64,000 nt of DNA from the NCBI RefSeq assembly GCF_052425735.1, contig NC_135758.1, forward strand, positions 12,648,001-12,712,000, read 5' to 3'. The DNA is from Oculina patagonica. Taxonomy: Eukaryota. This document shows, piece by piece, positions 997-35,200 of this stretch. The notes beneath the pieces were generated by a model that ran no database searches, was not told where the DNA came from, and worked only from the letters and a program-made list of their open reading frames with translations. The position numbers were made by a program, and so were the translations under genes. The first letter of the stretch is position 1. The number at the start of each line of letters is the position of its first letter.

Positions 997-3900
997 AATC
1001 ATCCAAGCCTTCCATTTATGGTAGTGGATCGCCTAAGACGATAGAAGCTCAAGATCGAAGTCCAATCACCTTGAACATTGGTGATAACGTGACAGCACTC
1101 ACCAATACAAGGATAGCTATTCACTGTCCGGCCAGCGGTGTACCAATACCTACTGTAACGTGGACAAAAGATGGTCAAGAAATCATCAGCGATGGCAGGT
1201 ACACCGTTCAGGATGATGGTCCGTTGTTGATCCGTGAAGCTGATGAAGAGGACACTGCTCGATACACGTGCACTGCAAACAATGTTGCTGGTAAAGATAG
1301 TGCATCAAGCACGGTGACGACTGTCAGTAAGTAGGCTAAACCCTCTCAAAATACTGTGTGGTAGTATCCATGTAATAAATATTGTAAAATTCATTAAATA
1401 TTCATGCGGGTGCAAACCAATCCGAGTACCATATTCAGATCACATGTACACAACTGTAAACCCCAATACAAATCATACAATAGAATTAACTTTTGATACA
1501 AACTTCTGCTCAGCTAATTAGTATTTATTAACTTTTGATACAGATCTGTACTGATTCGCATAACAATACTTTGTATTCAATTTATTGGTTTCATTTCACA
1601 AGTAGAATAAAATATTCGCGTCCGATCAGTATGGGCGTTTACAATCTCCCGCTCATATTTTATCTACTACATAAAGATGGTCAATTTTAAGCTCGGTAAA
1701 AAATAAAAATGAATTGTTCAATAATGACACGAGCATGGTACAAAGAAAAATCTGAGTCCGCAACGGGAATCGAACCCATGACCTCCCAGATACCGGTTTG
1801 GCGCTCTTACCAGCTGTGCTACGAGACTAGCCCAAATGGCCCAGCTCACAACGAGTCTCTTGTAGCTCAGTTGATTAGAGCGCCCAACCGGTATCTGTGG
1901 GAGGCCATGAGTTCGATTTCCGTCGGGGACTCAGATTTTTCTTTGTCCCATGCTCGTGTCATTGTTGAAGAATTCATCTTCAGTATCTATATAGTTTAAA
2001 CAGTAACTTTTAACAGTTATTTATATTTAACCTGAGAAAACTTACATTTAAATGTGTTTATCAGTGTTAATAAAGTACGGTGACAAAAAACATCATTAAA
2101 TCTATTTATTTTCACAGAGCCCACCAAACCAAAGATAGAAGTACCTAGGCCTGGACGAGATATTCCCGTTGGCGATGGTAGTCCAGTGACGATGAACGTT
2201 GGTGATAACGTGACAGCAGCTTCAAACACTATCATCACCATCAGGTGTCCAGTTAGTGGAATACCAACACCATCCGTTACCTGGGAGAAAGAAGGAGTGC
2301 TACTTCTAGACCAAGAGAGGGTTTCTGTTAGAGTGGACTCTTTAGTAATAAGAGGAGCAGAAGTAGAAGATAGCGCAAAGTACACTTGTAGGGTCTCAAG
2401 TCTGGCCGGAATGGATAAGCTTTCTTCTGTCATCAAGATAATTGGTTAGTGATACACTGGTTTACTACCTTCCGAACTGTAACCAGACCTTTGCCATAGG
2501 CGGGGCAAGATCTTGCTAGGGGGTTCTGGGGGCATGCCTTCCAGAAAATTTTGGAATCCAGAATCTCCGAAGCTGAAGCATTTTTGATGGCGTATTTCGT
2601 GGGAACAAAATCAATCTTGTTCAACTGGGGATTGTTTCCCAACAAAACATATGAAAACAAATCTAGGCGAGGCAAGCGCCTCGTCTTGCCTCTTGCTAGT
2701 TTCAGCCCTGGTCCTAGCGTTGGAAATAAGTTGTTTAACAGTATTTGTTCACTTCCGTTGAAAGGTCCCTCAAAACCAAAGTTTAACATCTCTGCTACAC
2801 CGAAGACGATAGAAGCTCAAGACCGAAGTCCCATTACTCTGACCATTGGTGATAACGTGACAGCACTCACCAATACAAGCATTACCATTCAGTGTCCCAC
2901 CAGCGGCGTACCAACACCAACTGTCACGTGGACAAAAGATGGTCAAGAAATAACCAATGATGGCAGGTACACCGTTCAGGATGATGGTTCATTGCTGATC
3001 AGTGAAGCTGACGAAGAAGACAGTGCTCGATACACGTGCACTGCAGTCAGTGTTGCTGGTGAAGATAGTGTATCAAGCACGGTACAGGTCGTTGGTAAGT
3101 AGGTGAAAGTCTTATGTGTGAAGACCGGATTAGGAAAATCTAGAATCCTAACCTATACCAAAGTGATGGCAAAATTAATATTTTCAATTTAACATAATTG
3201 TCTACAAGAATAATTAAATCTTGTGTTGGATGATTGGTTTAATCTACGCTTTCGTTAGTTCCAGCTATTGTTCCAGAAATCGTGCTGCTAAAATCCAAGG
3301 TTAAAAAAATTATCACGGTAAAATTATCACGATAGTCTAAAAGCTAGGTACAAAATTTGCGAAAAGCGCAAAAAATATGCGCTAAAGTAACGAAAAATAA
3401 CCCAAACTTATCGTAATGCACACAGAGCCCAAGAAACCAATGATCAAGGTCCCTGATACGAAACGAGAGATTCCCGTTGGTGATGGCAGTCCAGTGGCTA
3501 TGAACGTTGGTGATAACGTGACAGCAGCTTCAAACACCACCATCACCATCAGGTGTCCAGTTAGTGGAGTACCAACACCGTCTGTGTCCTGGAAGATGGA
3601 GGGCGTCCAAATTACTGAAGGAGTCAGGTTTTCCATTACTGCTGATAACAGTCTGGTTCTCAAAGGACCGGGTATAGAAGACAGCGCCAAGTATACTTGT
3701 AGTGTTCAAAGCGAGTTTGGAAAAGATGATACTTCTTCTGTTGTGACGATAGTAGGTAAGTGCTAATTCATAGTCCATTCAAGATACTGGGAGTTGGATT
3801 AAGGTAAAGGGAAAAAAGTTTTAATGTAGACGATTTGGCTTCCTTAATAATCGCTTGGGTATGCTCTCGCAACTCTGAAACAGACACATTTTGTCTGAGA

Positions 3901-6900
3901 AAGCTTTAACTTGGGTCAACATTAAGCTAAGGTACTTAAAAGTAATTCGCGTTGATGTCGAAAATTCAAGGAGATATCCCTCAACCCTCAAGCGTTTGGG
4001 AAACGCTGTGGCCAAATAGTTAGCGCGATGGACCCGGGTCGAGCGATCCGGAGTCGAGCCCCAGCTGTGATCACAACGTTGTGTTCTTAAGCAAAATACT
4101 TTACTCTCTTAGTCTCATAGTCCCTCTTTCCACCCAGGTGTCCGGCGAATGAATTTAATGCTGGGGTTTACCCTGTGATAGACTATATCCCACCCAGCGG
4201 TGGGGGGGGGGGGGGGGGGGGGCAGAAATAACCCTAGTCGCTTAGTACTAAGGAAACTGGGATTAACACCAACCTGATGCGCCACTATGCCCGAACGAAT
4301 ACATTACCAAATGTCGAAAATGGATGTTTGATTAACAACCACCTTTTTCTATGATAGAACCCTCCCCGCCTGCCGTAAATAGTCCTGATAAGCCAAAGAC
4401 GATAGATGCCCAAAACCAAAGTCCAATCACCATGACGATTGGTGATAACGTGACAGGACTTACCAATACAAGCATCACCATTAAGTGTCCTACAAGTGGC
4501 GTACCTACACCTACTATCACGTGGACAAAAGATGGTCAAGTCATCTCTAGTGGTGGCAGGTACACAGTTCAGGATGATGGTTCATTGCTGATCAGTGAAG
4601 CTGACGAAGAAGACAGTGCTCGATACACGTGCACTGCAGTCAGTGTTGCTGGTGAAGATAGTGTATCAAGCACGGTACAGGTCGTTGGTAAGTAGGTGAA
4701 AGTCTTATGTGTGAAGACCGGATTAGGAAAATCTAGAATCCTAACCTATACCAAAGTGATGGCAAAATTAATATTTTCAATTTAACATAATTGTCTACAA
4801 GAATAATTAAATCTTGTGTTGGATGATTGGTTTAATCTACGCTTTCGTTAGTTCCAGCTATTGTTCCAGAAATCGTGCTGCTAAAATCCAAGGTTAAAAA
4901 AATTATCACGGTAAAATTATCACGATAGTCTAAAAGCTAGGTACAAAATTTGCGAAAAGCGCAAAAAATATGCGCTAAAGTAACGAAAAATAACCCAAAC
5001 TCGTAATGCACACAGAGCCCAAGAAACCAATGATCAAGGTCCCTGATACGAAACGAGAGATTCCCGTTGGTGATGGCAGTCCAGTGGCTATGAACGTTGG
5101 TGATAACGTGACAGCAGCTTCAAACACCACCATCACCATCAGGTGTCCAGTTAGTGGAGTACCAACACCGTCTGTGTCCTGGAAGATGGAGGGCGTCCAA
5201 ATTACTGAAGGAGTCAGGTTTTCCATTACTGCTGATAACAGTCTGGTTCTCAAAGGACCGGGTATAGAAGACAGCGCCAAGTATACTTGTAGTGTTCAAA
5301 GCGAGTTTGGAAAAGATGATACTTCTTCTGTTGTGACGATAGTAGGTAAGTGCTAATTCATAGTCCATTCAAGATACTGGGAGTTGGATTAAGGTAAAGG
5401 GAAAAAAAAGTTTTAATGTAGACGATTTGGCTTCCTTAATAATCGCTTGGGTATGCTCTCGCAACTCTGAAACAGACACATTTTGTCTGAGAAAGCTTTA
5501 ACTTGGGTCAACATTAAGCTAAGGTACTTAAAAGTAATTCGCGTTGATGTCGAAAATTCAAGGAGATATCCCTCAACCCTCAAGCGTTTGGGAAACGCTG
5601 TGGCCAAATAGTTAGCGCGATGGACCCGGGTCGAGCGATCCGGAGTCGAGCCCCAGCTGTGATCACAACGTTGTGTTCTTAAGCAAAATACTTTACTCTC
5701 TTAGTCTCATAGTCCCTCTTTCCACCCAGGTGTCCGGCGAATGAATTTAATGCTGGGGTTTACCCTGTGATAGACTATATCCCACCCAGCGGTGGGGGGG
5801 GGGGGGGGGGGGCAGAAATAACCCTAGTCGCTTAGTACTAAGGAAACTGGGATTAACATCAACCTGATGCGCCACTATGCCCGAACGAATACATTACCAA
5901 ATGTCGAAAATGGATGTTTGATTAACAACCACCTTTTTCTATGATAGAACCCTCCCCGCCTGCCGTAAATAGTCCTGATAAGCCAAAGACGATAGATGCC
6001 CAAAACCAAAGTCCAATCACCATGACGATTGGTGATAACGTGACAGGACTTACCAATACAAGCATCACCATTAAGTGTCCTACAAGTGGCGTACCTACAC
6101 CTACTATCACGTGGACAAAAGATGGTCAAGTCATCTCTAGTGGTGGCAGGTACACAGTTCAGGATGATGGTTCATTGCTGATCAGTGAAGCTGATGGAGA
6201 AGACAATGCTCGATACACTTGCACTGCAGATAGTGTTGGTGGTAAAGACAGCGCTTCAAGCACAGTAACGATTATTGGTAAGTAGTGGAACTCATACCAA
6301 GCGAAGAACGTGCCTTACAAATAAACTAATTTACTTGCTCTTTTTTAAATTGTGAACATAAGAACTTTCCTTTTTGTCGATGTTTCACTTGTGAATAGTG
6401 CGCTGCCCTTTAACATTAAAGCATTATCCACTCTCGCCGATTTATAAATAAAAAAATAAATAAAATAAATGGTGTCTATAGTGGTCATGCACTTAGCTTC
6501 ATATCTCTACGAGATAGCTAGTTTACAGGCACGCCACTGAAACAGAGGAAACAAATATTTTTAAATGAACATAACAAGGTTAAAAATCCCAACTGGCAGG
6601 AGGCAGATCAGTTTGGCTTTATAAAAGCGTGGTCGAGGATTTGAACTCGGGACAACCGAGAAACAAATCCAGCTAGTGGCCAAAACAGGTCTTGAACCGG
6701 GGACCTCCGGATTACAACACCAGCGCCCCAAACCACTCGGCCACGTTTGCCACCTTAAACCGGTCTTTTAACAAGACCGGTTTTCCATCTTACGATTTAA
6801 GACAAGGCAGTCAACTGTGCATGATTATTTTTCGCAGACCCCGTCAAGCCGGTGATCGAGGTTCCTAAAACCGGACGAAAGATTCCCGTTGGCGATGGCA

Positions 6901-9900
6901 GTCCAGTGACTATGAACGTTGGTGATAACGTGACAGCAGCATCAAACACTACCATCACCATCAGGTGTCCAGTTAGTGGAGTACCAACACCATCTGTTAC
7001 CTGGGAGAAAGATGGAGCACATATTACTCAAGGAAGGACTCTTTTCGTCACAACTGACAATTCTTTAGTCATAAAAAAGGCAGATGCTGATGGCAGTGCA
7101 AAATACACTTGTAGCATTCAAAGCGAGTTTGGGAAAGATGACATTTCATCCGTTGTCAAGATAATCGGTAAGTGCAGTTAGTGCTTATAACGTTTCATTT
7201 TTGAGGTGGCTCCTGCACCAGGCTACTAGCTACAGAATATTATACTCAGTCCGTTGTCATTTCGTCGCCCGTTACGTGTAGTGCCTGTATTGCTGCTGTT
7301 GATGTACAAAACACAGTTAAATGTCTGTTGGGTAGAAAATTTGCTTCAAGACAAGAAGAGTATATTTTTCATGATTTGCCGCATTTGCTTCCAAAGTGAC
7401 ATAAACTGGCAGCCAGAAATCAAGTTAATATTAAGAGATTTACACATCGAATTCTGCTCATCCTCAGACTTTCAGTGTCTTAGTGTCTCATTTGGCTTTC
7501 TTTAATGTTAATGCGTGGTACGCACGTGGCCCCATGGGGAAATAGGACGACTTTTAACTTTGAACTCTGTTTTCGGCTGGTAATTAATTCATACCACCAC
7601 CTCGCGCGGAGCCAATTCAGTTTTGCAGTTTTATTAATTTTAAGACAAGTATCAACTAAAACAGCGTTAGGTGCCTTTTAGATGACAACAATTTCTTAAA
7701 CGTACTTTAAAAGTTCATCGTTTTACTCATAACTCTCACTGTACGTTATTTTTACAGGGCACAAGAAGCCTGTTATTATAATTTCTGACAGGCCAAAGAC
7801 AATAGAAGCTCAGGATCGAAGTCCCATTACTTTAACCATTGGTGATAACGTGACAGCACTTACAAATACAAGCATTACCATTCAGTGTAACACCAGCGGC
7901 GTACCAACTCCATCTGTTATGTGGACAAAAGATGGCCAGGAAATTCCCCGTGGTGGCAGATATAGAATTCAGGATGATGATTCATTGCTGATCAGTGAAG
8001 CTGAAGATGGAGACTCCGCTCAATACACGTGCACTGCAGACAGTGTTGCTGGTCAAGACAGGGCTTCAAGCACAGTTCAGATTGTCGGTAAGGTTTTCCT
8101 CGTCTTCTGTTTCGGAAACCAAATTGCTTTTGAATCACGCCGTCTTTGAAAACATGGTTTCGCGTTCGCTTCCGTTTTGACAACCTCAATAAATTGAGAA
8201 ACTATTAATACTTGTTCTCCTACGTAGACCCCATTAAGCCAGTTATAAAGCTGCCCGAACCTGCACAAAAGATCCCCGTTGGAGATGGCAGTCCCGTGAC
8301 TATGAACATTGGTGATAACGTGACAGCAGCTTCAAACACTACCATCACCATCAGGTGTGCAGTTAGTGGAGTACCAACACCAGCAGTTACCTGGCAGAAA
8401 GACGGAGTGCCTCTTATTTCCGGAGACAAAATTTCCATCATAAATAAAACCCGGTTGGTTATTCGAGAACCAGTAGGAGACGACAGTGGAAAATACACTT
8501 GCAGTGTTGAAAGCAAGTTCGGGAAGGACAGCTTGTCCTCCATAGTAAAAATACTGGGTAAGTGTCTAATCCCAAATTTTCGATGTTCTTGTAACGTAAT
8601 AAAAACGAGGCATCTGGATTCTTTCTTTTTTATGCGTAAATAGCTGTCTTTATCTTCCGTGGCGTAGCCATCCTTGTTAATTTTCAGTTTATTATTTCTT
8701 TGGTGCTTGTCTACGCTAAGGAAGTATTATTTTGAGGTTTCCTTAAATTTAATAATAATTTTGCACATCATGACAAAGTAACGAACTTAAAATATTGTTA
8801 CTAAGTTACTTAGAATTAATTTTCGTTGAATAGAAGAAAAAGTGACAGTGACACAGTTACGTTTTCAGTGTAAATTTCCAATTTTCTTTTCAAGTCATTC
8901 CCTTTATTTCACGGTAAAATGAACAAAACATTTTTGCATGGTCTTCTCAAATTCTTGGCAAACTACAAAGTTTCAATGTGTACCTTAATTACCTTAATGT
9001 AATGGGCGCCCTGTATTTCATGGTTTTACATAATGTTCTTCGCAGGGCCTTCTAAGCCTAAGGTAGAAACTTCAAAGAAACCAAAGACAGTAGAAGCTCA
9101 AGACCGAAGTCCTATTACCTTGACCATTGGTGATAACGTGACAGCACTAACCAATACAAGCATTACCATTCAGTGTCCCGCCAGCGGCGTACCAACACCG
9201 ACTGTCACGTGGACAAAAGATGGTCAAGAAATCCCTAATGATGGAAGGTACATAGTTCAGGATGATGGGTCATTGCTGATTATTGAAGCTGATGAAGAAG
9301 ACAGTGCTCGATACACGTGCACTGCAGACAATGTTGCTGGTCAAGATAGTGCAACAAGCACGGTGCAGATTGTTGGTAAGTCTTTTTATAGACTACTTTG
9401 ATATTTTTTGAATGCCCCACTCATTAGCAATCTTCACGTGTGGAGTTCACACTTTATGGAATATTGTAGCTCATTATGTCTTCTTGCACGGTGCCTTGAA
9501 TTGGACGCTTTAATCGTCTTATTACAGATGCATCGTATTAATTTCTGTCCCGTCATTTTACTCGCTAAATAAACCGGCATTATTTTGTTAAAAGTGACTA
9601 AATTTGTCGCCGAAACCATTGGCTCATAAATGCGATTTAGGTAGAAGGACAGGACTGGGTAGCCAGCGTAGGAGGCGTAAAACGGGAAGGGGGCAGTAGG
9701 TGGATTGAGGAAATTCGAGGAGTGAAAATATAGTTGGGGCTACCCTGCGACGCTAGGTATTGATGCTGCATGAATGAACACAAATGTGCAGTAAACAGGT
9801 TATTTTTATATCACACAGAGCCCGTTAAACCTGCGGTCGATGTCCCCAAGATTGGACAAAAGATTCCCGTTGGTGATGGCAGTCCAGTGACTATGAACGT

Positions 9901-10151
9901 TGGTGATAACGTGACAGCAGCTTCAAACACTACCATCACCATCAGGTGTCCAGTTAGTGGATTACCAACACCAGCTGTTACCTGGCATAAGGACGGTGTT
10001 CAAGTTATTGAACTGGAGAGAATAAGATTCACTGCCGATAACAACTCGTTAGTTATTGAGGGAGCGACGGCTGTGGACAGCGCAAAGTACACTTGCCGTG
10101 TTCAAAGTGTGTTTGGAGTGGACGAGTTGTCTTCTGCGGTGACTATTATAG
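997..10151 (+). CDS. Ig exons 1-12: first alternating A/B cluster (6 A-B pairs)
   Basis: Odd exons are A type (DRSPITLTIGDNVTALTNTSITIQCP..GVPTPTVTWTKDG). Even exons are B type (IPVGDGSPVTMNVGDNVTAASNTTITIRCPVSGVPTP). Exons are 327-333 nt with phase-1 introns. Confidence 0.92.
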
Positions 10152-13100
10152 GTATGTTTTGTCATCTGCTAACAACATCTACGTCTCTTGTTACCAGCTG
10201 ACAAGTTATATTAGTTTTCGTATAAAATAAAATTTGATGTCAGTAAAAAATTTAAAAAACAAAACAAAATAACTTCAAAATAACAAAGCCAGTTGTATAT
10301 AAAAGGCTGTTAAGAATGAAATGACTTTAAAGAAGAAATGTTTCCATTCAGATTAGCTCCCTCAAATTGTATTAGAAAGTTTGCCATGATTTAAATGCAA
10401 ATTAATAATAATAAAATAATAATAATAAATCTTTATTTCAACACGGTAAAAATCATCAGGACTTAAAATTACTTAATTTAAAATTACTTAATACCTATTT
10501 TACATAATAAATTTAAATTACATTAGTCGTCTACAATTAGTTATAATAAAAGAAATGCCTGCTTTCCATGAATGCCGTGTGATGTTAATATTTACATTGA
10601 TTTTAGCCAAAAATGAAACTGCTGCAGCCGGATTTAAAGCTAGTGAGACCTGCTACGCTTTAGGATGCCAATGCCAGATGCGCAAAGTGTACTTTGCGCA
10701 ATAATCACTGATGTTCGTGCTGGTTCTAACTGCCGACAGACAAACTGGTAAAAGGACGTGTCTATCTTATCATTCTTACCGTACCCAAATTAGCGAGTAG
10801 CCAATCAGAAGCGCGATCTTCTGTCCTGATATCCTACGATATCAAGTCACTGACCTGATATGCCACCATATCACGGTCACTTTGAAGTAAAGTAGTGTTA
10901 CCGTACGATGAATTGAAAAAAGGTTTTACCAATAAAACGGAACCTCGTATTTTAAATTTAGCTGGTGTTTAGTGGTCGTAAAAGGAGAAAAACTTTCCCG
11001 CCAAAACTAAACTTGAACGTGCTCGCCAATTGCGCGATGTTTGCTGTCGAGTACTGAGACATTCAGACTGAAACAATGGAGTCGGAATTTTTCACATTTT
11101 TCGCTAAATTTGGATTTGGAAATTTAGAGAATGAAACTCCAAACAAACAAGTGGGAAAAAAGGCAGAAGAGGAACTTGTTTAAAGTGTTCAAGACTAAAA
11201 ACGTATTAATACAAGTAGGTCAACACAATTTGTACTTCGTACCTGGCAAGCATGGCTTCAACAGAGCGATAAATAGTAACAGGATTTTTGGCTGAATTTG
11301 GGTACGGTAAATACCTAATCGTACCTTTTTGGTACGCTTCGGCTGCATATCAGGCTCGTTTGGTCTCGCCATGGGTATTTTGGCTCGACTGCGTCTCGCC
11401 AAAATACGGACCATGGCTCGACCAAACTTGCCTGATATACAGCCGAAGCGTACCAAAAAGGTACGATTAGGTATAAAAATTATGACAATAATTTGAACAG
11501 ATTTTACATTTATATACACAAATTCTTACTGTCACTGTCAATCCATTCCGACAATCTAAATTTCAATCCATCCTTAACACAAGTAGATGCGCTTAGCAAT
11601 GCAATTAACTGTTGTTATTCTTTCAAAAATTGTTTTAGACCCAGTCACACCTCAAATAACCTCTTTACTTGGGGATATAACTTCATATAGTCAAGATCCA
11701 GTCAACATCACCATCGGACAAAACCTTCTCACAGTAATCGATACTACATTGTCAATTTACTGTGCGGCGACTGGCATACCTGTTCCGAAGATTACTTGGA
11801 CGAGAGGAAATGAGACTCTTCCCTCGGATGGTCGGATGAGCGTAAAAAACAGAACTCTTGTTATAGTCGAGCTGGAGATTTCTGACAGTAGAAACTATAC
11901 ATGCTCCGCAGAGAATACCGCAGGAGCAGCTTCAGTCTCGTCAAACGTGACAGTTGCAGGTTAGCATGTAATTTTTATTGAAGTCTTTGGTAAATCGTAT
12001 ACAACTGATATTTCTCATCATGGAGGAGGGGACTTTTGATGTTTTGAAAACGAAATACCTTGTAGATCAGAATAAAGTGCGATTACTGTCCATTAAACTG
12101 GTGTAGTCGCAAACGAATGCGCTCTTACTAACTATTTATAGCCGGGCCAAAGACATATTTAGCAGATTGTCCCGGAAAAATCTCAATCTTTCTGTCTTGG
12201 AAATGTTTTACTTTCTTTCAGTTCCTACACCGCCAGAAATCATTCGCACAGGGATTAAAGATTTACAAGTCCTTCAACCCAAGTCAATAAAAGCTGTTAT
12301 TGGTAGCACAGTTCTCACGATCAGTGGTAACAATGTGTCAATATCTTGTGATGTGACGGGTTTTCCAACTCCATCCGTTGAATGGACTAAAGATGGCGTT
12401 TCCTTTGGAACAGAGGATTCCATTTTAACTCTCTCTTCTGTAAATGTTGACGACACTGGTTTATATTCGTGTACGGCCACCAGTCCCTTGGGTCCGTTTG
12501 ATTCACAGAGCACAAATTTGACAGTGATAGGTATGTGTTCAACTCACTTTACAAAGAGGCTAACGGTTACCCGATTTAACAAGACATATACGTTTAAAAT
12601 GAATAGAATAATTGATGTGAAAATTCAAAGGAGCTACCTTACTATGAAGTAGGTCCACTGACACTCAACTATATGGCACATGTAAATTTTGAATTTTTTT
12701 TTTACATTTTAGTTGCAAATATTTAAAACAAACAAACAATCTCTGCCTACCAACTAAATAAATTGATGGAAACAAACAACTGACTAATAATTTAGCAATT
12801 ATGATCGATAATACGAGTTATGGATATGCTTGAAATTTGTTGAAATTGTTTGTTGCTTCGCAATGTTCAATGTAGCTAGCTTTAAAAATGCACCAAAGAA
12901 CTTTATTGACTGTGCAGGCTTTTCAGCTTTGGAATGTAAAGAAGCCCTTTCGATTTAAAGGTATACGTATATAGTTATACATACAGTTATAGGTATCGGC
13001 AAAGTGGAGAGACCCGTTGGGTTACGAACCAGATAACGGCTGCGAGAAACATTGACTCAGCATGCAAAATGAAACTACCTGTTATCTCTTACTTTCACTC

Positions 13101-22100: not shown

Positions 22101-25100
22101 TACGGCGCCTGCTACGCAGGCTATCAAACCTGTGTCATTTATGAACACCAGAGAAATAGCACTTTTTTCGCATATTACCTAAAATACAATTTACCATATT
22201 TTGGTCATTTCAAATATAGTTCTATCAAAAACCATTCAATATCTGTTCCTATGAACAAACATGAGTATTTCGCTCGTTGGCACTTACCGATAGGTACAAC
22301 TAGTATATACGGATTGAATGGTCATGTTGCAACGGATTTATAAGCGCAAGTTGAAGGCTTAGGGAGTTCCTAAATCTGATACACAACATGGTTATTTATT
22401 CTTTATCTGACTTACCAAACGTCAAGCTGCAGAGAGCTATTTTTTCAGTTAAATGATGCAAGTTATTTAGGCGAAAAGCATCGAAGTACGAGTTTATGAC
22501 CGTAAAATGGGACGTTTGATTACTAGCGATCAGGCATATTGTTACAGGTTGTGGCAATAATGGAACATAAAACTAGGCCTTTGGTTTTGTAGCTGTTAAA
22601 TCAAGAACAGTTTATTTACAGGAAGTACTGTTTGAAACGTTTCCTAAAAGTATTTCTGGTTCCCTTTCAGAGCCCAATCTTCCAAAAATAGAATCATCGG
22701 ACGCTACTGTTTCTTGGTATAACAGAGAGCCAAGAGTACTTCCGGTTGGAGGCTCTGTGGAGGTACTGTCGGGAACGGAAGTGACGTTGACTTGCAAGTA
22801 TTCGGCTTTCCCTGAGCCTGACGTCAAGTGGACTGTTCTGGACGAAGAAGGTGATCCACTACCAGACGCCGGATATGAGGTCATTAACGGTTCACTTGTA
22901 CTGAGGGCTTTACAGCCCTCAGATTCAGCTCAGTATGTCTGCTCCGTGAAAAACGTGGCAGGAACAGCCTCGGCATCAACAGTACTTAAAGTTGTTGGTA
23001 AGTATTTCAGTTTTCTTTACTTTTCAAGCAATGGCCGATTCCCTCTATGGCGCGCGCGTACAGGGAATCACGGTAGTTGTATTATCGTTGTAGTTCATGG
23101 TTTGATGAATACAACTACCATGACTCCCTGCAGGCGCGCGCCATAGAGGGAATCGGGCGTTCTTTTTTCATCTCTAAGTCTTGTATTTTTCTTTCTTTGA
23201 AAACAGGATAGCAAATGTGAAAACTCTTGCATGCGACTCCAATATAACAAAAAATGGCTATTTACATTATATGCGAAGCTTGCTGTATGCATGAGAAAAA
23301 CCAGGCTTTGTTATACCTTCCTTAATAACCGGCTTTAATTTAACTGTTCTAGGGACAACTGAGAAAATTAATGCATTTTGTTACTGGAGAGAGAAGCTAG
23401 ACTTTACTCTGTGGGCACAACCTAAGGTCGTGAAATTACAAGACAGTCCGAAAGGCATTCCGATGCATTGCAATAATATCTCTTTAATTTCAGTCGTTTC
23501 AGTTGCCTGTTTCCATCACAAGTTAACGATATAGTGTTTTCGTTTACCAGTCGGTTATTTTGTGTAATATGAAAGCTATAGACTACTGTTTATGACCGCG
23601 GACCATCGATTTAAGAACGACACATAATGGTCTTGCAGTCTGCACTGATTTTACGCTTCTTAAGTTACTACGTTACCGTTAAACAAAGTAAGTAAATGTT
23701 TAACATTATTTTCCCTGTTTTAAAAGATCCACAGCCGCCATCGATCAGGTCTTCACAAGAAAGCATAGTTTCTTTATCGGATCGTTCTCCTGTGGAAGCT
23801 ACAGCCGGAAGTGTCGTCACTGTTCTCTCTGGCACGCGTATTACAGTCACATGTTCTGCTTACGGGACGCCTACTCCGTCCGTGGCCTGGAGCAGAGGGG
23901 AGGAGTTGATTCATACGTCATCGGCAGACAATATGACGTCTGCCCGGACTGGTATCTTAAGAATTGAAAATGCTTCTACGGACGACACGGGAGATTATCT
24001 CTGTACCGCTATGAGTGAAGTTGGTGCTGATCAGGAGTCAACGAAAATTACAGTCATTGGTCAGTCTCTTGCCATTAATTATTAGCTAGACAGTTTAAGT
24101 CTTGTTTGCATTTAGTAGTTTTGCAGTCAAACCCCGCTATAAATCAGAAAGTAGCGAACCTGCAGCGACTATCTACCAACGATAAGTGTCTGTTTCTTGC
24201 ATTTAATGATAAAGGAATGACGTGTGGAGTGTAAATTCCGAGTTCACAGATGAGATCTGAACCCACGACCTTCCGTTAGTCGGTCATTTTTGGGCTGTGC
24301 ATTGCATTGTTCAGAGAAAATGACGGAACTACTGCAGGCTCATCCATGTAATATGTGTGTCCGCCTTAGAGATGTACTGTACTATAAGTATTATTTGCAG
24401 GGGTATAAAATAAAATTATATATAAATTTAAGTTTGTTTTACCACAGAGAAGGCATTTTTTTGCATCCAGTATGGAAAATTACAAGAAGTCGGAAATAGG
24501 GACTAGAGCAGTTTTTTTAAGGAACGTAGCCATGCTATATAGCATTGAATTCTGAGGTAAAGCGTTTTGTTAAAACGTTTCGGTGGAAGATTTACTGACC
24601 AGTACGGAGTACCTTCCATCTCAAAGAAAATGGAAAATAAGCTTGTGTCAAGTGAATACAAGTTTGTGTTTGATCCAATAACAAACTGTCACGAAAAGTT
24701 CAGATTACAGAGCGCTACCCTCAAAGTACAGTTATTCCAACGATTGTGAACATGCAGTTGTAGGAAAGCCAAGCGCCCATCTCTACGTGTCTTTTTAGAG
24801 AAAATGTAATGTAGATATTTATTTGCAGAACCTAGCAAACCGATTATTCAGCAACCGGAAGTGGACAAGATTTCTCTTACCAACGATACTTCAGTGGAGA
24901 TCTTAGCAGGAAGTGACGTTACAGTGCTAACACAGACCCGTTTTAATATCACCTGTGAGGTCAGCGGTGTACCAAAACCGAAAATCACGTGGCTAAAAGA
25001 TGGCAAGCGAGTGGGGTCTGAGGAAGAGAGTTCTTTGGTACTGACCATTAGGGACGTGAAGGATGCTGGTCAGGTCACTTGTCATGCCGGGAATTTGGCG

Positions 25101-28100
25101 GGAAATGCAACAATAAGCTCAAATATTGACGTCATTGGTAAGAAATCATTAATAGGATAAAGAAGCAAACAGCCTCTGAAATAAACTAAGTGTAAAACCT
25201 TCCAGCCCTGTAGACTGGTAAATTGACGAAGAGCCCTGTTTTAGGACAGGGTACTTTACTCTTACTACGCTTCTCTTTAACAAGTATATTAAAGGGGCTA
25301 GGTATTTTAGGTAATTATTTTAATTTTCATTAAAAAAGAGAGGTAAACTTCAAATAGGCAAAGCAAAAGTCATTTATAATTGGCAAAATCACGGCCACAC
25401 AACAAACAAGGGTGATTTTTGAGCATTGCAAATTACACTTTCATACAAATTCTCGATAAACCCCTCTTTTTCCCTTTCTGTGCTTCTTATATGAACCGCT
25501 AAAATTCCACGAGAGTTTAAAGCTGTAATTGTGATATTTCAGTTAATTCGTATGACCAGTTGTGTTAGTCGACCAAAATTGACGGTAAAATTGCGTGACA
25601 TAGCCCCTTTAATAAACACCTAAATTCAGTCCTAGTGTTTAGGCTCTTTTTAACCCATAAGCTGACTGTTGTTTGTGAGCTTGTTTATTTGGTTTTCTAA
25701 GATAATAAAGACCAATCTGGCACGTTTTGGTTGTGTTTCAGAACCAGTCATTCCTCGTATCAAATCGGACACTGGTACAATCAATGCACTGAGCAAGCGA
25801 CAAGCTGTTTCAGCTTCTGTTGGTGTGACTGTGCAGACGTTCACAGCTACCACACTGACTCTGAAATGTCAAACGGAAGGATCTCCCAAGCCGACTGTAT
25901 CCTGGAGCAAGAACGGTCAGCCACTTGAATCTAAGGATAGAGTGTCTATATCTGATGAAGGGACTTTGACCATAAAAAACACTCGGACACAAGACACAGG
26001 ACGCTACAGGTGTTCAGCCAAGAATGCAATCGGAGAGACGTCTGAGGCCTCGTCTGTATACGTTCGCGGTAATTATTACTGTCATGTTTGCAGTAATTAT
26101 AAGTGATAATTACCGGTAATAATTACGGATAACGTTTAGAGTAAGCGTGATTGATCCCGCTTTATTTTGATTGGAGTGTAAGTTACCTTTTGAAACTCCT
26201 TCTCGTTGAGGAAAATTTTTGAGAATGTACGTGTATTTAAGGTATGCCTTGCTATGGTGTTAAACATATTTTTCAGTGTTACAATTTTAAATCTTTGTGT
26301 TCTTCTCTTGTTCACAAAATCTTTTGAGCTTGGATAAACCGTATTGTGGCTCTATACGAGGTATTTTGGGGTAAATTATAGCGATTGTTGCATTGTTTAG
26401 TTAAGTTTAGCTTTGTCGACTGCCTGTCAAAAGTCGACTATCGCTTTCAGAAGGTGGACAATTATTCTGTATGCCAAGAAGACAACAAGAAAACTCTCTG
26501 TTCGAGCCGCAATTCCGAATAAAAGTAGTCGACATTTTATTGTTTGATCTCGATAAAGTGTACTCAAGGACATGTCAAGAGGACAATTGTTTGTAACTTG
26601 TAAAAAAATAATCGTCAAAAGACTTGGGGATATTTATTTTGGGATCAATTCCGTCAGATCGGAGTACAAGTACGACTTCTTTTTAACCAAGTGCTTAAGC
26701 TTTTGATTATCACATTTCACACCAATATGGTACCAATAAGCTCCTTTTCAATGATGAAAGAACGGTAGTCTCCAAACGTCTGCGGATAAGCTGTTCACAA
26801 TTAAATTATTGCGCTTAGAAACAAACCTTTAATTTTCTCACACCCCTATGAGATCATCCGCTATTAAGGCGCAACACAGTTTTCAACAATATTTTGACAA
26901 TATTGCGATCTTGTTATGGCTCCTTTTTAACCGCTCTGCAACGTGGAGGAGTAAGGGCTCTGGGAACGTAATTAGACTAAAATTCGAAAGTCGTACTCGT
27001 ACTTCGATCTGAAGGTCCCTATTGTCTTGAACCAAACCCTCAAGACTAGCATTCAATGTCAGGGAGGAGAACTAACTGGGAATAACTGGTATAACAGACC
27101 TCACTTTCTTTCGCTTGCAGCACCTATGTCTCCAAAAATACGAAAATCCAAGTCGTACATTATCTGGTACGAGAGGCAGCCGTTCAAAGGAAAAGTTGGC
27201 GACAACTTGACAACGTTGAAAGGCAGGAAATTGACGCTGACCTGTCCTGCAGTGGGCTTGCCGAAACCAGCAATCTCATGGTACAGGAGTGGTATGAGGA
27301 TGAAAAGCAGTAAAAACTACCTTTTGATTGGTCAGACACTGATCATGTATAATTTGGATCCAATGGACACTGATCGGTACACATGCGTGGCAAGAAACTT
27401 CGCCGGCGTCAAGACCGCCACCACTACCTTAAAAGTTCACGGTATGGGGTTTTTTTTTACAGTGTTTATTAACAAAATAAATAAATAAATAATTTTACAT
27501 TATTTTGTGTTTATTATTTTCCTCTTTGTCTCTATCGGAAAGTATATTCAATCGAATCTCGATAATAAAGTCTCCTATAGAGTCGTTTCCAAAGGCCCTA
27601 AGTGCCAAGAGGCACAAGAAGGACAAGTGAAGGCAAAGGTGATAGAATCGTTTTACATGACTTCATACTAGTGTTTTCCCCGTTAGGATATTACGAGTTC
27701 TAATTTATTCAAAAAGCTCTATCGGTTGTTCAAAAGGAAGATAACGTTTTTGCACTCCGATAAATCACTATGCTGAGGAAAGGCGTTTTCCAAACAAACG
27801 TTATCTTTTGTTTAGCGATAAAATAAACTGTTGTTGCTGCTGCTGTTAGCCGGTGAATAGGGTTTTTCCCCTTTGAACAACCGGGCCCTGAGTTTTAGAC
27901 GGCAAATCTTGTTCAACAGAACAGCCTTGCTTAGGCCGCAATTTGTTATAGGATGTCGATCTCTCACTTTGTGGGACCCTTTTCACGCGCCATCCTGTTT
28001 CCAACAATCAAGATATGTCCTGTTAAAACAATGTTAATCTTTAGCGATACTACAATAAATATGGTCCCACGTCACGTTGCTGCCTGCTCTGCCAGCTATT

Positions 28101-31100
28101 TCTATAATTCTTGCGTGGCTTGGATTTCCTTTACAGAGCCCAAGGCACCAGACATCATGTCCGCGTACGGCAGTGAAGAATCCTTACAAGACCGCAGACA
28201 TTTTAACGTTACAATTGGAAAGGATATCTCCATCTTGCGAGGAAGTCCCCTAACCATCAAGTGCCCAGTGGTTGGCGTACCAGAGCCTAAGATAACGTGG
28301 ATAAAAGATCGCAAGATGCTTTCTACTAATGATCGCATGGATATGGACTGCACTGGCATACTGAACATCTTCAAGGTGGAACTGGAAGATTCTGGGGATT
28401 ACGTGTGTTCCGCTCAAAGCTTTCTCGGAATGGATATTGCGTTTAGTTCTGTTACAGTTATTGGTAAGAATCTATCAGCCAGCTTCTCTATTGCTACATA
28501 GATAACCTTTTGCGATGGTTAGATAATGTGTTATTTTATTTATTTGTTTGATTCTTTTTTTTTTTTTATAGATTGTTTTATTTCAAAACTTCCGTTTCTC
28601 ATTATTGTCAAGTTCAACACTATAACAGTGCCTTATGTCCACGGCGTCTTTGTTTCTAATGCGTGACAAGTAAGGCGAAACAGAAAACGAGGTTATGACT
28701 GATGCTCCAAACAAGATTTTGTTTTTTTAATAGAGCTACATGTACAACTTTGGACTCTTCCGGTTCTTACACAGACATTTTTCAGGCATTGAGCGTAAGG
28801 GGTAGAGGTCGTGATGGATTAAACCTGTTATAGAGTTGATCCAAAGCGCTGGTTCCCTTTTAACACACGAACACTACACCACACAATGAAACAGGAAACC
28901 CCATTAAAGAGTCACTTATACCCCGTTCACACCAAAGCTAAAACACCTTTAAAAGCTGTTTAGTTTAATTTTTTTCTTTATAAAAGTTGCTAACTGATGT
29001 TTGTCGACTTTAAATTTGACACAATGAAAACACAAATAAGAGCTTCCTTTAAAGTAAGCCTATGTAAAATTCCGTTTCACAGTGTTTTGTTGCTGATTCT
29101 CGTTTTGTTAAAGCTTGGGGTATTAAAAAAGTTTCCGTTAGAATCTGTTTACGAAAAGCACGATTATGTTATTGTTGTTGTTGTTTACTGATGTTTGCTT
29201 GTATGTTTACTTCTTATTCCTGACTAATACAAGAAAACTTTTTTCTACAGATGCTGTTAAGCCGTCAGTTGAAATTTCCGGTAGAGTGTACATCAGCGGT
29301 GGCGATCTTGTAGACATGCGTGTCGGAGACAACTTGACTGCCATTGTCAGAACTCCTGTCAACATAAACTGCACCGCTAAAGGAATCCCTAAACCGAGAA
29401 TGACTTGGAAAATGAACGGACAACAACTAGGCAATGGGGGAAATTACAAAACTGATAATAATGGAACACTGGCTATTAAGGGAATCGAAGATCCTGGGGA
29501 ATTTAGATGTATTGCAGAGAACTTTGTTGGCCAAGACGATGCATCAAGCTTTATAGCACTCTTAGGTTTGTGACGATCTTCTTATTTTAAAAAGAAGTGA
29601 TCACAGACGCAAAAAGTTTAATAAGATAACTTTGGATCACTAGTGTGATCATCAATCTGTAATTACTGTTTGTCACACTTGATTATGTAAACATGTTATT
29701 TAAGATCGACGTTCAAAAGTATCGCGCAAGGATATCAGCTGCCAAATAACATAATGTATGCAACCCTTGCACAATTATGCAAAATACATTCCTCCAGTAA
29801 ATTAAAATGACAGGGAACTACCCAGTAATCTATCTCCCGAAATGACAAGAAAACGCAGGTCAACAGTGTAATTATTGTTAGCAGGAATTTGTAGAGCACT
29901 ACTTACTTTAAATCTACAGGAGGTGGAAGCAAACCCGGCTGCATAAATAATTAAACGTTTGCGTTTGGTTACAGCACTTGATACCTGCTCCTTTCCTAGG
30001 ATAGGTTTCTGGTTGACTTGACGATTAATTAAGAGCGAATATTTAACAAGGCTTTTTTCAAAAAAGGAATAAATATTAATGAAAACATGCTTATATCGTG
30101 TGCAACATACATTCGATAGATCCTAAGAAACCTGTGGTTATCACTCATGAGAAGACATCCATGAAAGAGGCCAAAGACCGAAGTCCCATCACCTTGACTA
30201 TTGGTGATAACGTGACAGCACTTACCAATACAAGTATTACCATTCGGTGTCCTACCAGCGGCGTACCAACACCAACTGTGACGTGGGCAAAAGATGGCCA
30301 AGAAATCCCTGATGATGGCAGGTACACAGTTGACATTAATGGGTCATTGGTGATTGATGGAGCCCTTCAATATGACAGTGCTCGATACACGTGCACTGCA
30401 AACAGTGTTGCTGGTAAAGACAGCGCATCGACCACAGTGAAGATTGTGGGTGAGTTTTTCTGTGTTCTTGACGTCGCACGACTTTCTTCACTTCTCTTTA
30501 CATTTCAACTAAAACGTTCTGCTGCTAAAATAATTCTGCACGGTTAACAAATACACGGTTGACAAATCCCAGTTAATATAACATGTGATTACTTGACTGA
30601 CTTCGTCTAAACGTTCAAAAAATCATTGCAGAGCCCGTCAAACCTGTTATCGAGGTTCCCAAACCTGGCCAAAAGATTCCAATTGGTGATGGCAGTCCAG
30701 TGACTGTGAACGTTGGTGACAACGTGACAGCAGCTTCAAACACTACTATCACCATCAGGTGTCCAGTTAGTGGAGTACCAACACCAGCGGTTACATGGGA
30801 GAAAGATGAAGTCCTAATTACTGCTGAAGGAAAGTTTTCGATCAGTAGTGACAACTCTCTGGTAATTGAAGGTGGCGCCGAAGATGACAGCGCAGATTAC
30901 ACATGTAGTGTTAAAAGTGTGGCTGGAACAGACAGGGAATCGTCAACAGTTACGATAATCGGTGAGTTGAAACTCATTGCCTTTTATTGCTATTCCATTT
31001 TAAAAAACTTGAGAACCACAGGCAATGACGATCTTTTATCTCATAGGTTCAGATCCGTTAGGAAATTTTTATGTCATAATGACAATTTCCGTAAGTATTG

Positions 31101-32212
31101 CCCCCCCCCCCCCCCTCCCAAACCCAAGAAAAAGGTGATGATCTTAACATCATAAAACAGTCAACTCTCGTTATAGCGGACACCCTCAGGACACCGTTTA
31201 GTGTCCGTAATAGCGAGAGTCCGTAAAAGCGGGGTGTGAGGAATAGATAATGACGAGCTTATCAGCAGTAGTGAAACTGCTAAGCAGTCGTTGGGAAGGG
31301 AGAACGGTGCTTCATCTCTGTCTAAGTGTCGGGAAGGAAAAGTCGCAAGCTGAGGTGAAAAAGTAGAGTCTGTTGTACAGCTACTGAAGGAATTGATGAA
31401 AAAATAATTGTTCCAGAAGTCTTTTGAGTTGTGTTTTGACAAGTTATGAACAGTTATGCTACATGCAAAGTTAATTGTGACCGCTTTATCGAGGGTCAAA
31501 ACAATAAAAAATATTGTTATTTTGGAACCACAAAAGTGTCTGTAATTCAGCAATAGCGAGAGTTCGTAATAGCGGGAGGCATTTCCAGTCAAACCTCTAT
31601 AGCTTTCGCTGGGGATCTGAATTTGGAAGTTTTAGCGAGTGTCCGTAATAGCAGGTGTCCGCAAGGCAAGAGTTGACTGTACTAATAAATTCGAAAAACA
31701 TCGTCGCTAGTAATTTATATAACAAATTAAAAAATAATTAAGGGTTAATTGGGATTTACAAGAGTGTAATACTTTGTAACAAAGACGTTGTCTCAATCCA
31801 ATTGACAAATGGTTTTGAACAGAACCTTTCGCACCTGTGATAAAGACTTCTGACAAACCAAAGACGGTAGAAGCCAAAGACCGAAGTCCCATCACCATGA
31901 CCATTGGTGATAACGTGACAGCAATTACCAATACAAGCATTACCATTCAGTGTCACGCCAGCGGCGTACCAACACCAACTGTCACGTGGACAAAAGATGG
32001 TCAAGAGATTGGTGGTGGTGACACGTTCACAATTCAACAAGATGGATCTTTGCTGATACGTGGAGCAAACGTAGGGGACAGCTCTCGCTACACGTGTACA
32101 GCAAAGAGTGATTCTGGTGAAGATAGTGCCTCAAGCGTTGTACAGATTGTTGGTGAGCCTTTAACAAGTCTTAAATGATTGATTGATTGACTGATTTATT
32201 GATTGATTGATA

Positions 32213-32279
<67 letters not shown>

Positions 32280-35200
32280 TTGATACTTGGACTCACCTTT
32301 TTCATAGAAGATTAAAGGAATCCCACATAGGCATAAAAACCGTATTGAATTTCTTCTTGTTATTGTGGCCTGTAAGAATCTGATTTTCGCTCCTAAACGG
32401 TGAAAAGGGCGGTAAATGTGTCTGAAGCAAGGGTTGCGAACAGCAGTACCAACCACTTATGCTTTTTGTTTTTCAGAATCTACCAAACCTGTTGTTGAAG
32501 TTCCCGAAACTGGCCAAAAGATTCCCGTTGGCGATGGCAGTCCAGTGACTATGAACGTTGGTGATAACGTGACAGCAGCTTCAAACACTACCATCACCAT
32601 CAGGTGTCCAGTTAGTGGAGTACCAACACCATCCGTCACCTGGCAGAAAGACGGATTACAGATTACACCTGGAGATAAGTTCACAATCACAAGTGATAAC
32701 TCTTTGGTGATCAAAGCAGCAGCATCCCAAGATAGTGCAACATACACGTGCAGTGTTCGAAGCATGACTGGTACCGACAGTGCATCTTCAACAGTCCAAA
32801 TTGAAGGTCAGAGCTGTTAAGTAGTTCTTTCTTAGTTGACCTTAGATTAACACTTTATGTAACTTATTTTAGAAAAGAAAGAAAGAGACAGGAGGTAGGT
32901 GATATGTTGAAGCATATCAGAAAATCTGGAAACCTTTGAGGAGTATCTATCGCGAAAACAGGTCTTGATGACAAAGTTAGCTTCAGTTTTTCATAAATTG
33001 ACGATGTGAATAGAGTACTCTTGGCTGTTTGTTAACCTCTTCCATAACGTGCATAGTATTTTATCGTTTTCTTGTCCTCTTTTTATCCTGCTTTTTGTGA
33101 ACATTGGGCCTTCAAAGACAACATTCAGTAGAAAGATCGATACGTATGACAAGGTAGTCCATAACGCTGAAAAAGTGTACATTTCTTATACAACGGAGAG
33201 TTTGGCCATGGATGGAAACTTCAGGCCTCCACCTTAGATGTGCTATTCATCTTCGGTGTTATTTTCACTCCAAAACATTCACCCTTAATTAAGTTATTTA
33301 AAAGACCTCAACCATTCCTTTACCTTGACAGAACCTTCTAAACCAAACATCAATATCACTGACAAACCAATGACGATAAAAGCCAAAGACCAAAGTCCTA
33401 TCATCATGAACATTGGTGATAACGTGACGGCGTTTAGCAATACAAGTATTTCCATTCAGTGTCCTACCAGCGGCGTACCAACACCAACTGTCACGTGGAC
33501 AAAAGATGGACAGGAAATCCCCCCTGGGGGCAAGTATACAGTTCAGGATGATGGTTCATTGGTTATCCACGAGTCTAATGAGGAAGACACTGCTCGATAC
33601 ACGTGCACTGCAGACAGTGTTGCTGGTAAAGACAGCGCATCAAGTATGGTGCAGATTGCTGGTAAGCTGTGTTATGACCGGTTAACGATAATCGCAAACT
33701 CCATGAAAGAAAAAGCTCAAACCAAAGCAATTACCTTTAGTTTCGTGTCGGTTTGTACAAGTTTTAATTCTTATCGTTTTGTAAAGGATATCTATATTAA
33801 GCTGAAAGTCGCGTTATTGTTACAATTTGTGCACGAAGGAATTGTATTTTGATGGCAATTATTACATGTACAATTTTGCAACGAGAAACGTGTTTTCAAC
33901 CTTGTTTGTAGATTTGAAGAAGCCATCAATTCTAGTCCCAAAGCCAGGTCCAAAGCTACCAATTGGAGATGGCAGCACGGTCGTTACACCCGTCGGTAGC
34001 CAAATCACTGAGATTGCCTATGTCAGGATCTCGCTGACCTGTCCTACTGAAGGATCACCTCCTCCAAAAATCACTTGGAAAAAAGACGGCGAGGAGCTGC
34101 TATCCGGTGGTCAATATGAGATTGATGATGAAGGGACGTTGACGATACTAGAGGCAATAACAGAAGATACGGGCAAGTACACTTGTTCGGCTCAGAATGT
34201 AGCCGGTCTAGAGGAAGTGACGTCAACCATTGATATTCTAGGTATGTAACAGAGTAACCCGCTCATGCTCAAGACTTGTTAAGAACAATCCATGAGAACA
34301 CAGACACTTTTTAAAGATATCTTTGCTTAAAAAGACCAAACAATGTCATCTTTGACTTCAAATGTCCTGCAAAAACTGCACGTGCCCCAACAGTTTTGTC
34401 CAAGATAGTGGTTTGTGTAAAAAATATTACGCTGCGTCAAACTTTCCTGAATTTCCTGATAAAATGCGAAGCCACGAAAGGCCAAAACGTTCAAAGGAAA
34501 CTGTTTTAATTTAGTGTAATCTAACACTAGCTTTAATGAACCTTGGTCGATTTCCGCTAATTGTGGCATCGTTTGAGACCAATTAACACACACGAATTTA
34601 GCGTAACTAAAACTAAGGACTAGGATAACGTGGAAGTTTAACAATGAAAAAATAGGAAAAATTGAAGCTATTCCGCATAACTTAACCCAGTAGATAATTT
34701 CTCACCCAGGGAAGCCACGATTCTTTAGAAATAATTACCAGCTACTGAAACATCATTATGAATAATAGTTACTACTACAGGATAACAAGTCATGATAACC
34801 AGTTGTATTTAGGAATTTACTTTTTATATAGAAAATAAATACTAAGCCTTATTCCGTCTTTATACTAAACAACCCGGGTAAATAAGTATCATTCCTTTTT
34901 CAGAACCTCTGGAACCAATTATTCTACCACCAAAAGGTTCGATCATCTCAGATGACCAAAAGCGAATAACAGCAGGAGTGGGCTCAAAGATTGACACAGT
35001 AAAAGGTGTTACAATTATAATAACATGCAACGTGAATGGTGTTCCAATACCTGTGTTAAACTGGACCAAAGATGGTCAGGACATTTCACCAGACGAACGA
35101 GTGGTACTGCTGGAATCTAACGGAAGACTTGTTATCCGAGACTCTGTTGTTGAAGACAGTGGTAATTACACGTGTACTGCAAGCAGCAGGGCTGGACAGG

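Follow-up and report, generated by a model that had tools for sequence, protein, structure and literature searches.

The window analysed here is a 64,000-nucleotide (nt) stretch of the coral Oculina patagonica (NCBI RefSeq assembly GCF_052425735.1, contig NC_135758.1, positions 12,648,001 to 12,712,000). On its + strand lies the 3′ portion of a very large gene, predicted to encode a giant papilin/ADAMTSL-like secreted matrix protein, in which two types of immunoglobulin (Ig) exon, A and B, alternate in two clusters. A 102-nt tract of the B exons keeps one nucleotide consensus, silent sites included, between coral clades whose single-copy exons have diverged to about one synonymous substitution per synonymous site (dS), and the A-exon consensus changes far less than neutrality predicts. 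The C-terminal halves of the same B exons diverge as single-copy sequence does. The comparison indicates that the copies overwrite one another by gene conversion and that selection on the nucleotide sequence is required to hold the consensus. Probably, conversion couples the copies and thereby amplifies weak purifying selection.

Contrast within the repeated exons

Exons of the gene are ~300–340 nt long, and each encodes one I-set Ig domain. All introns are in phase 1, with acceptors 119–128 nt 5′ of the first Cys codon and donors typically 57 nt 3′ of the second. Nine A exons (330 nt each) and eight B exons (327–333 nt) were found, and AG/GT borders and phase 1-1 are present in 17/17. All lie on the + strand. 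A exon 1 (A1, 997–1326) is an I-set Ig exon by borders and frame, and Pfam assigns the A type to I-set (E = 5.6e-20 for A2, 2765–3094).

B exon 4 (B4, 6838–7167; I-set by Pfam) and B exon 8 (B8, 32477–32806) were exons 8 and 32 of an earlier sequence-only reading of the window, here called the original prediction. They differ at 1/113 nt over 6882–6994 and 32521–32633, and this near-identity is confirmed. After the core Trp, about half of their residues are shared, as had been claimed; the exact count is 28/54 residues (95/162 nt), not 29/55. Introns do not align. Self-BLAST aligns the exons alone, with one exception, a 1.9-kb tandem duplication, and in a MAFFT alignment with 150-nt flanks the introns are unalignable. 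The identical tract reported between A8 (31823–32152) and A2, formerly exons 31 and 3, is a 49-nt run here and was 48 nt in the original prediction. The C-terminal half of A9 (33332–33661) does resemble those of A2, A5 (7758–8087), and A6 (9046–9375), to which it is 78–80% identical, versus 66% to A8. A5 and A6 were placed by borders and frame.

Across the B exons of the window, the proportion of synonymous differences (pS) in sliding windows is 0.06–0.12 over codons 21–52 and 0.60–0.80, which is saturated, over codons 57–108. Core and flank of the B exons differ in silent rate far more than chance would allow. A exons have a pS of 0.2–0.5 along their whole length.

Comparison loci and the neutral scale

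The open frame around B4, used as a protein query, matched ~300 single-exon frames on long contigs of other assemblies. Five loci (L001–L005) were retrieved from independent assemblies of other corals; the window is abbreviated W in these comparisons. All five loci are the same gene, with the same flanking single-copy exons. The ~18 single-copy I-set Ig exons that an exon finder placed between the clusters (11639–29565) served as the internal neutral control. Their dS against W spans 0.54–1.17 (L004, 0.54; L003, 0.61; L001, 0.87; L002, 1.14; L005, 1.17), and L003 and L004 are separated by a dS of 0.18. Unique Ig exons have an orthologous pS of 0.39 and a ratio of nonsynonymous to synonymous rates (dN/dS) of 0.16–0.20. 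Codons 15–55 of these exons have normal pS, and the freeze is confined to the repeated exons.

L002 and L005 have an identical A-exon consensus and near-equal dS to the window. These two loci may represent cluster 1 and cluster 2, either from a single species or from close relatives.

A consensus frozen across corals

The tight B tract was defined as alignment codons 20–53 (102 nt; 6891–6992 in B4 and 32530–32631 in B8) and was compared in 41 B exons from six genomes. Third positions of the tract fit one consensus in 66–100% (mostly ≥85%) of the 41 exons. Tight-core dS is 0.12 within W, 0.11 between W and L001 (0.87 in unique exons), and 0.21–0.23 between W and L002 or L005 (1.14–1.17 in unique exons). 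Between two coral clades, the consensus of the B tract changed at 0/26.3 synonymous sites, where 13–15 changes are expected under neutrality (binomial p = 9e-9). The A-exon consensus changed at 7.5/69.5 synonymous sites against an expectation of 35–41 (p = 4e-13).

Distances within and between species are alike in the cores, at 0.102 versus 0.094 for B (permutation p = 0.97) and 0.153 versus 0.153 for A (p = 0.56). The core tree is star-like and, unlike the tree of C-terminal halves, recovers neither species groups nor positional groups. Core pS between W and L003 or L004 is equal for orthologous and non-orthologous pairs. A partial orthology signal appears between L003 and L004 only, with a core pS of 0.23 for orthologous and 0.35 for non-orthologous pairs. 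Orthologous cores retain some shared private changes over a dS of 0.18 and none over a dS of 0.55, which fits repeated overwriting.

The sites of the tract are mutable. In at least one of the 41 exons, 65/102 sites and 31/34 third positions vary, and singletons are the commonest class. These counts led to the rejection of a two-class model in which a few sites are free and all others invariant. GC-biased conversion was rejected as the attractor because A or T occupies 19/34 third positions of the consensus. Consensus codons are specific to their sites; Thr is ACT, ACA, or ACC and Gly is GGT, GGC, or GGA at different positions.

The original prediction held that neutral recurrent conversion freezes the silent sites, that the core anchors reshuffling of the variable parts, and that the array diversifies a secreted Ig protein. 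Conversion among the copies is real, as detailed below. However, neutral conversion predicts a between-species divergence of 2 × mutation rate × time, and the net divergence observed is zero. According to PMC3924837, divergence between species at neutral sites under conversion stays at its neutral value. The cores are equally alike within and between species, with a consensus unchanged across a dS of ~1, and neutral conversion alone does not account for this. Because neutral conversion leaves net divergence between species neutral, yet the consensus is frozen, the sequences argue that selection on the nucleotides is required.

Collinear C-terminal halves of the B exons

The C-terminal halves of the B exons are collinear between species: B1, B2, B4, B5, and B6 of the window correspond to B5–B9 of L004 and to B7–B11 of L003. 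B1 (2118–2444, 327 nt) is the positional orthologue of L003_B7 and L004_B5, and B2 (3426–3755) that of L003_B8 and L004_B6. B5 (8228–8557) is the orthologue of L003_B10 and L004_B8 (support 0.996). B6 (9819–10151, 333 nt) closes cluster 1 and is orthologous to L003_B11 and L004_B9 (support 1.0). Tree support for the positional clades is 0.80 for position 1, 0.98 for positions 2 and 4, and 1.0 for positions 5 and 6. Some of these clades reach the distant coral clade (position 4 with L001, 0.94; position 5 with L001 and L002, 0.88).

Orthologous pS of these halves is 0.40, matching the 0.39 of unique exons, and dN/dS is 0.26–0.28, versus 0.16–0.20 in single-copy exons. No diversifying selection or shuffling of the variable part was found in the dN/dS and collinear orthology of the B C-terminal halves. 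They are under ordinary purifying selection at old, fixed positions. The reshuffling of C-terminal halves that the original prediction had envisaged is contradicted by this collinearity, the neutral pS, and the dN/dS. Its expectation that flanks would cluster by position across species holds for the B C-terminal halves; its companion expectation, that cores would cluster by species, fails, as cores cluster neither by species nor by position.

Gene conversion and unequal crossover

Lineage-specific states are common to non-orthologous copies. At seven A-exon sites, four of them silent, a clade-specific state is found in nearly all paralogues, copies of both clusters included. The third position of A codon 99 is T in 25/28 copies of one clade and G in 13/16 of the other (Fisher p = 2e-9). 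Codon 16 of the B exons encodes Lys in B4–B8 of the window, in both clusters, but Glu is retained in L003 and L004 at the positions orthologous to B4 and B5. This Lys is ancestral at the last position of cluster 1, and in W it is also present at B4, B5, B7, and B8. Codon 18 of the B exons is CCG, with a silent G, in 5/7 L001 B exons and in 0/34 elsewhere (p = 3e-5). The pairwise homoplasy index (PHI) test is weakly significant for A exons in W (p = 0.0125) and L001 (p = 0.04) and non-significant for B exons of W. The shared lineage-specific states indicate non-allelic gene conversion among the A and B copies across both clusters, and the exchange of sequence through conserved tracts put forward in the original prediction is upheld.

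Unit number changes too, as had been proposed. The tandem duplication (2800–4695 versus 4393–6285) spans 1.9 kb and is 97% identical. It produced A3 (4358–4687), which is chimeric: its 5′ part resembles A4 (5948–6277; placed by borders and frame), and its 3′ part resembles A2. The breakpoint lies inside a 38-nt stretch identical in A2, A3, and A4. B3 (5016–5345) is a recent duplicate of B2. Array lengths vary between species, and cluster 1 has ~6 to 11 A-B pairs depending on the genome.

In L002 and L004, A exons adjoin A exons, so B exons were lost. In L002, a single open frame at 9809–10600 (P0001, 200 aa) spans an A exon and the remnant of a B core.

Splicing and gene identity

RNA contigs from three public runs, carrying three organism labels, cover cluster 2. 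They join C17, A7, B7, A8, B8, A9, and the B-like exon in this order at the predicted GT..AG borders. Joints 29565>30120 and 30449>30632 define A7 (30120–30449), and B7 (30632–30961) is supported by borders and RNA and groups with L005_B1. A8, B8, and A9 are likewise confirmed by RNA. No exon-skipping or hybrid joints occur among the cluster 2 RNA contigs of the three runs, although these are short-word contigs that break at repeats and can miss rare forms. In these contigs, splicing of the A and B exons is constitutive and in order. Three positions of exon A9 (33447, 33450, and 33451, all within 5 nt) disagree between the window and the RNA contigs in all three runs. The disagreement reflects either a clustered change or a micro-conversion in the lineage of this individual.

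The original prediction had raised the possibility that mis-mapped reads made the cores identical during assembly or polishing. The RNA contigs carry the same exon sequences and junctions, and the five independent coral assemblies have the same tracts, each with private differences. No support for such an artefact was found, and its probability is negligible.

The gene ends in thrombospondin type 1 (TSP1) and PLAC domains. The tail (41893–43232) has two Pfam TSP1_ADAMTS matches, at 41893–42090 and 42351–42500 (E = 1.7e-5 and 8.6e-8), and a PLAC match at 43113–43232 (E = 5e-5; 24.3 bits, just below the 26.4 cut-off). An N gap at 42094–42301 was left as is. In papilin/ADAMTSL-like proteins, TSP1 repeats and then a C-terminal PLAC domain follow an Ig array, and because the gene ends in these domains it is classed, from its predicted domain order, as encoding a giant secreted matrix protein of the papilin/ADAMTSL-like type. 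The gene extends 5′ beyond the window, where any N-terminal ADAMTS-like cassette (TSP1, Cys-rich region, and spacer) would lie. Hemicentin was given up as the gene name once the PLAC domain was found. A protein atlas search gave generic I-set Ig matches only.

In-order splicing and a matrix-protein architecture both speak against a diversification system, and that part of the original prediction is not borne out. The one crossover-chimera exon and the variation in unit number between species agree with it, as does the conversion among copies. With zero net divergence and the collinear C-terminal halves also weighed, neutral conversion that feeds diversification is highly improbable. Because its exons are spliced in order, its C-terminal orthology is collinear, and its architecture is that of a matrix protein, the array is not an immune-style diversity generator. 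Overall, the interpretation in the original prediction is partly supported.

Amplified weak selection or a dedicated element

The reading that we hold probable combines sub-exon conversion domains with a coupling of copies that amplifies weak purifying selection. Two kinds of conversion domain would exist, one covering nearly the whole A exon and the other ~100 nt of the B exon, from strand A′ to the core Trp. The 17 copies here, and at least 22 in one cluster of another coral, would overwrite one another by non-allelic gene conversion. Linkers, introns, and B C-terminal halves would have escaped conversion and evolve like single-copy orthologues. Under such coupling, the family consensus could alter only when a change spreads through all copies. 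Weak purifying selection at each site, silent sites included, would then be multiplied approximately by the copy number. Private changes would enter single copies near the neutral rate and be erased afterwards by conversion, and the consensus would stay fixed while uncoupled exons of the same gene reach a dS of ~1. From time to time, unequal crossover between identical tracts would also insert or delete A-B units.

Theory points the same way: with conversion, selection becomes more effective, the evolution of constrained sites slows, and the rate at neutral sites is unaltered (Mano & Innan 2008, via PMC3924837). In a toy biased random walk with a per-copy S of 0.2–0.3, 17–22 copies change at 1–13% of the neutral rate and a single copy at 86–90%. 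Amplified selection would account for the limitation of the freeze to repeated exons and for the near-neutral short-term drift of single copies. It would also account for a divergence plateau at pS 0.1–0.3 whatever the relationship of two copies, and for the sharp boundary where the B C-terminal halves escaped conversion.

Several observations weigh against this model. The freeze of the B tract is total (0/26 silent sites) and demands weak selection at essentially each silent site. General codon preference was rejected as the agent, given that the same residue has different fixed codons by position. The load of deviations per genome ranges fourfold, from 2.1 to 8.2 per 102 nt. The near-neutral short-term rate of the cores comes from one species pair and possibly reflects relaxed constraint instead. 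The PHI test is non-significant for the B exons of W (p = 0.68), and the classic signature of conversion, in which paralogues are closer within than between species, is absent overall.

Alternatively, each A and B exon could hold a dedicated nucleic-acid element selected at every position, with conversion a mere bystander. Read as RNA or DNA, it could act in splicing or offer a landing pad to small RNAs or RNA-binding proteins. Constraint covers every codon position along a contiguous tract whose consensus is unchanged across a dS of ~1, and codon choice is site-specific with no general preference, which favours such an element. An exact 22-nt block, CATTGGTGATAACGTGACAGCA, is common to A and B exons (17 matches, all on the + strand; 0 expected). 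Acceptor pyrimidine tracts of A and B exons are slightly weaker than those of unique exons, at 0.63–0.67 versus 0.73 (p = 1e-5), this being the only usable difference in a splice-site position weight matrix comparison that is biased by the many similar A and B exons in the matrix.

Most searches for an element were negative. Local RNA folding for such an element does not exceed shuffled controls (z −0.6 to +0.4), and cores and C-terminal halves as a set span z −1.5 to +0.8, with nothing significant. Duplex signals are weak (z −1.3 to −2.4 for pairs such as the B core versus the A exon; self-duplexing gives no fair comparison). The whole window has no Rfam match. Stops interrupt all five other frames of the A exons and nearly all of those of the B exons, leaving no second frame, and no antisense copy occurs within the window. 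Constraint is weakest at the 5′ end of the exon, the usual place of splicing enhancers. Strong direct selection predicts a slow short-term rate, yet orthologous cores of L003 and L004 differ by 0.21–0.23 against a neutral 0.16–0.22. In addition, 30-odd unique Ig exons of the same transcript do without such an element. Small-RNA run X21 gave 0 reads on a 5.2-kb stretch and hence has no bearing on a small-RNA role. A dedicated element is unlikely, although it deserves real weight. That amplified weak selection, and not such an element, froze the consensus is what we infer.

The 22-nt block also suggests regulated in-frame core-to-core splicing, or programmed rearrangement at the block, that builds hybrid Ig domains. 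It reads ATT G/GTGATAACGTGACAG/CA, with GT and AG both in phase 1, so the frame would be kept between exons. Such joining would explain why every A and B exon needs an exact sequence at its centre. It covers ~22 nt and not the 100–300 nt of constraint, and no such joint occurs in the three RNA data sets, a weak test in that short-word contigs break at repeats and drop rare forms. This form of joining is highly improbable. The broader proposition, that the ~100-nt B tract and the A body, present at least 17 times in one very long mRNA and frozen across stony corals for a dS of ~1, are functional nucleic-acid elements (perhaps a multi-site landing pad for RNA-binding proteins or small RNAs) or that the 22-nt block enables in-frame core-to-core joining, is distinctly unlikely.

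Other features of the window

A diverged B-like Ig exon (33912–34241, + strand) follows A9, is outside the conserved family, and is orthologous to L005 11694–12023. Further single-copy Ig exons are present 3′ of cluster 2. In the intron between B7 and A8 (31014–31709), RNA contigs of the three runs stack at a word depth of ~560–8000, with loose ends and odd joints; this segment looks like an expressed dispersed repeat and not an exon of the Ig gene. The intron between A8 and B8 contains a (GATT)n microsatellite at 32169–32286. All three + frames of an intronic GC-rich stretch (0.49; 36900–37500) contain open frames rich in Arg, Glu, and Gly. Downstream, a second gene occupies 47042–50196 of the + strand. 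It encodes a Cys-rich PAN-like piece and an EGF domain by Pfam and has a 217-residue open frame (49546–50196) with no Pfam match.

Relation to known systems

Clustered protocadherin variable exons reportedly undergo region-restricted gene conversion, as described by Noonan and colleagues in Genome Research in 2004. As in the coral array, tandem paralogous exons have some segments homogenised, silent sites included, and others diverse, with boundaries within the exon. Protocadherin paralogues group by species and are alternative first exons with their own promoters, whereas the coral exons are constitutive internal exons with cores that do not group by species and a consensus frozen between distant species.

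Synonymous constraint elements and ultraconserved coding segments, reportedly described by Lin and colleagues in Genome Research in 2011, share with the coral tract a silent-site rate far below that of neighbouring coding sequence, across species. Each known case is one locus with a link to RNA structure, a splicing element, a microRNA site, or dual coding. The coral tract differs in being repeated at least 17 times, with no structure or second frame found.

Y-chromosome ampliconic genes and ribosomal DNA are the usual examples of concerted evolution. In the coral array, by contrast, it is segments of exons within a single gene, and not whole genes, that are coupled, and the effect is seen at silent sites, with 17–22 copies and a single-copy control within the same exon. 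Concerted evolution with enhanced selection (Mano & Innan 2008, Genetics 180:493; via PMC3924837) resembles the coral array in its coupled copies, slower constrained sites, and erasure of private mutations.

Arthropod Dscam1 also has tandem clusters of duplicated exons that encode whole or half Ig domains. Its exons are mutually exclusive and are chosen by intronic docking/selector pairing; all coral exons are included in order. No docking/selector-type complementarity was found: introns are unalignable, and a self-comparison of the window gave no inverted matches involving the array. The Ig/Fn3 super-repeats of titin and the papilin/ADAMTSL genes share with the coral gene one domain per symmetric exon, alternating types, and growth by tandem duplication, and papilin/ADAMTSL genes also share the order of an Ig array followed by TSP1 and PLAC. 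To our knowledge, sub-exon frozen silent-site tracts common to all repeats have not been reported in titin, papilin, or ADAMTSL genes. A literature search found no paper on this array or on frozen tracts in coral Ig-exon arrays, and 14-nt fragments of the shared block, in either orientation, were found in no paper.

The phenomenon combines concerted evolution and synonymous constraint; its silent-site freeze is unusually complete, and the control is built in. When paralogous exons are nearly identical at silent sites, this alone does not justify inferring neutral homogenisation or a diversity generator, and cross-species comparison is needed. With a coupled half and a single-copy half in one 330-nt exon, the array is an unusually clean natural test of the interplay of conversion and selection. 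If weak selection is amplified as proposed, most silent changes in a coral gene would be very slightly harmful. If a dedicated element is present instead, the mRNA of a giant matrix protein would carry a repeated exonic signal of a new kind.

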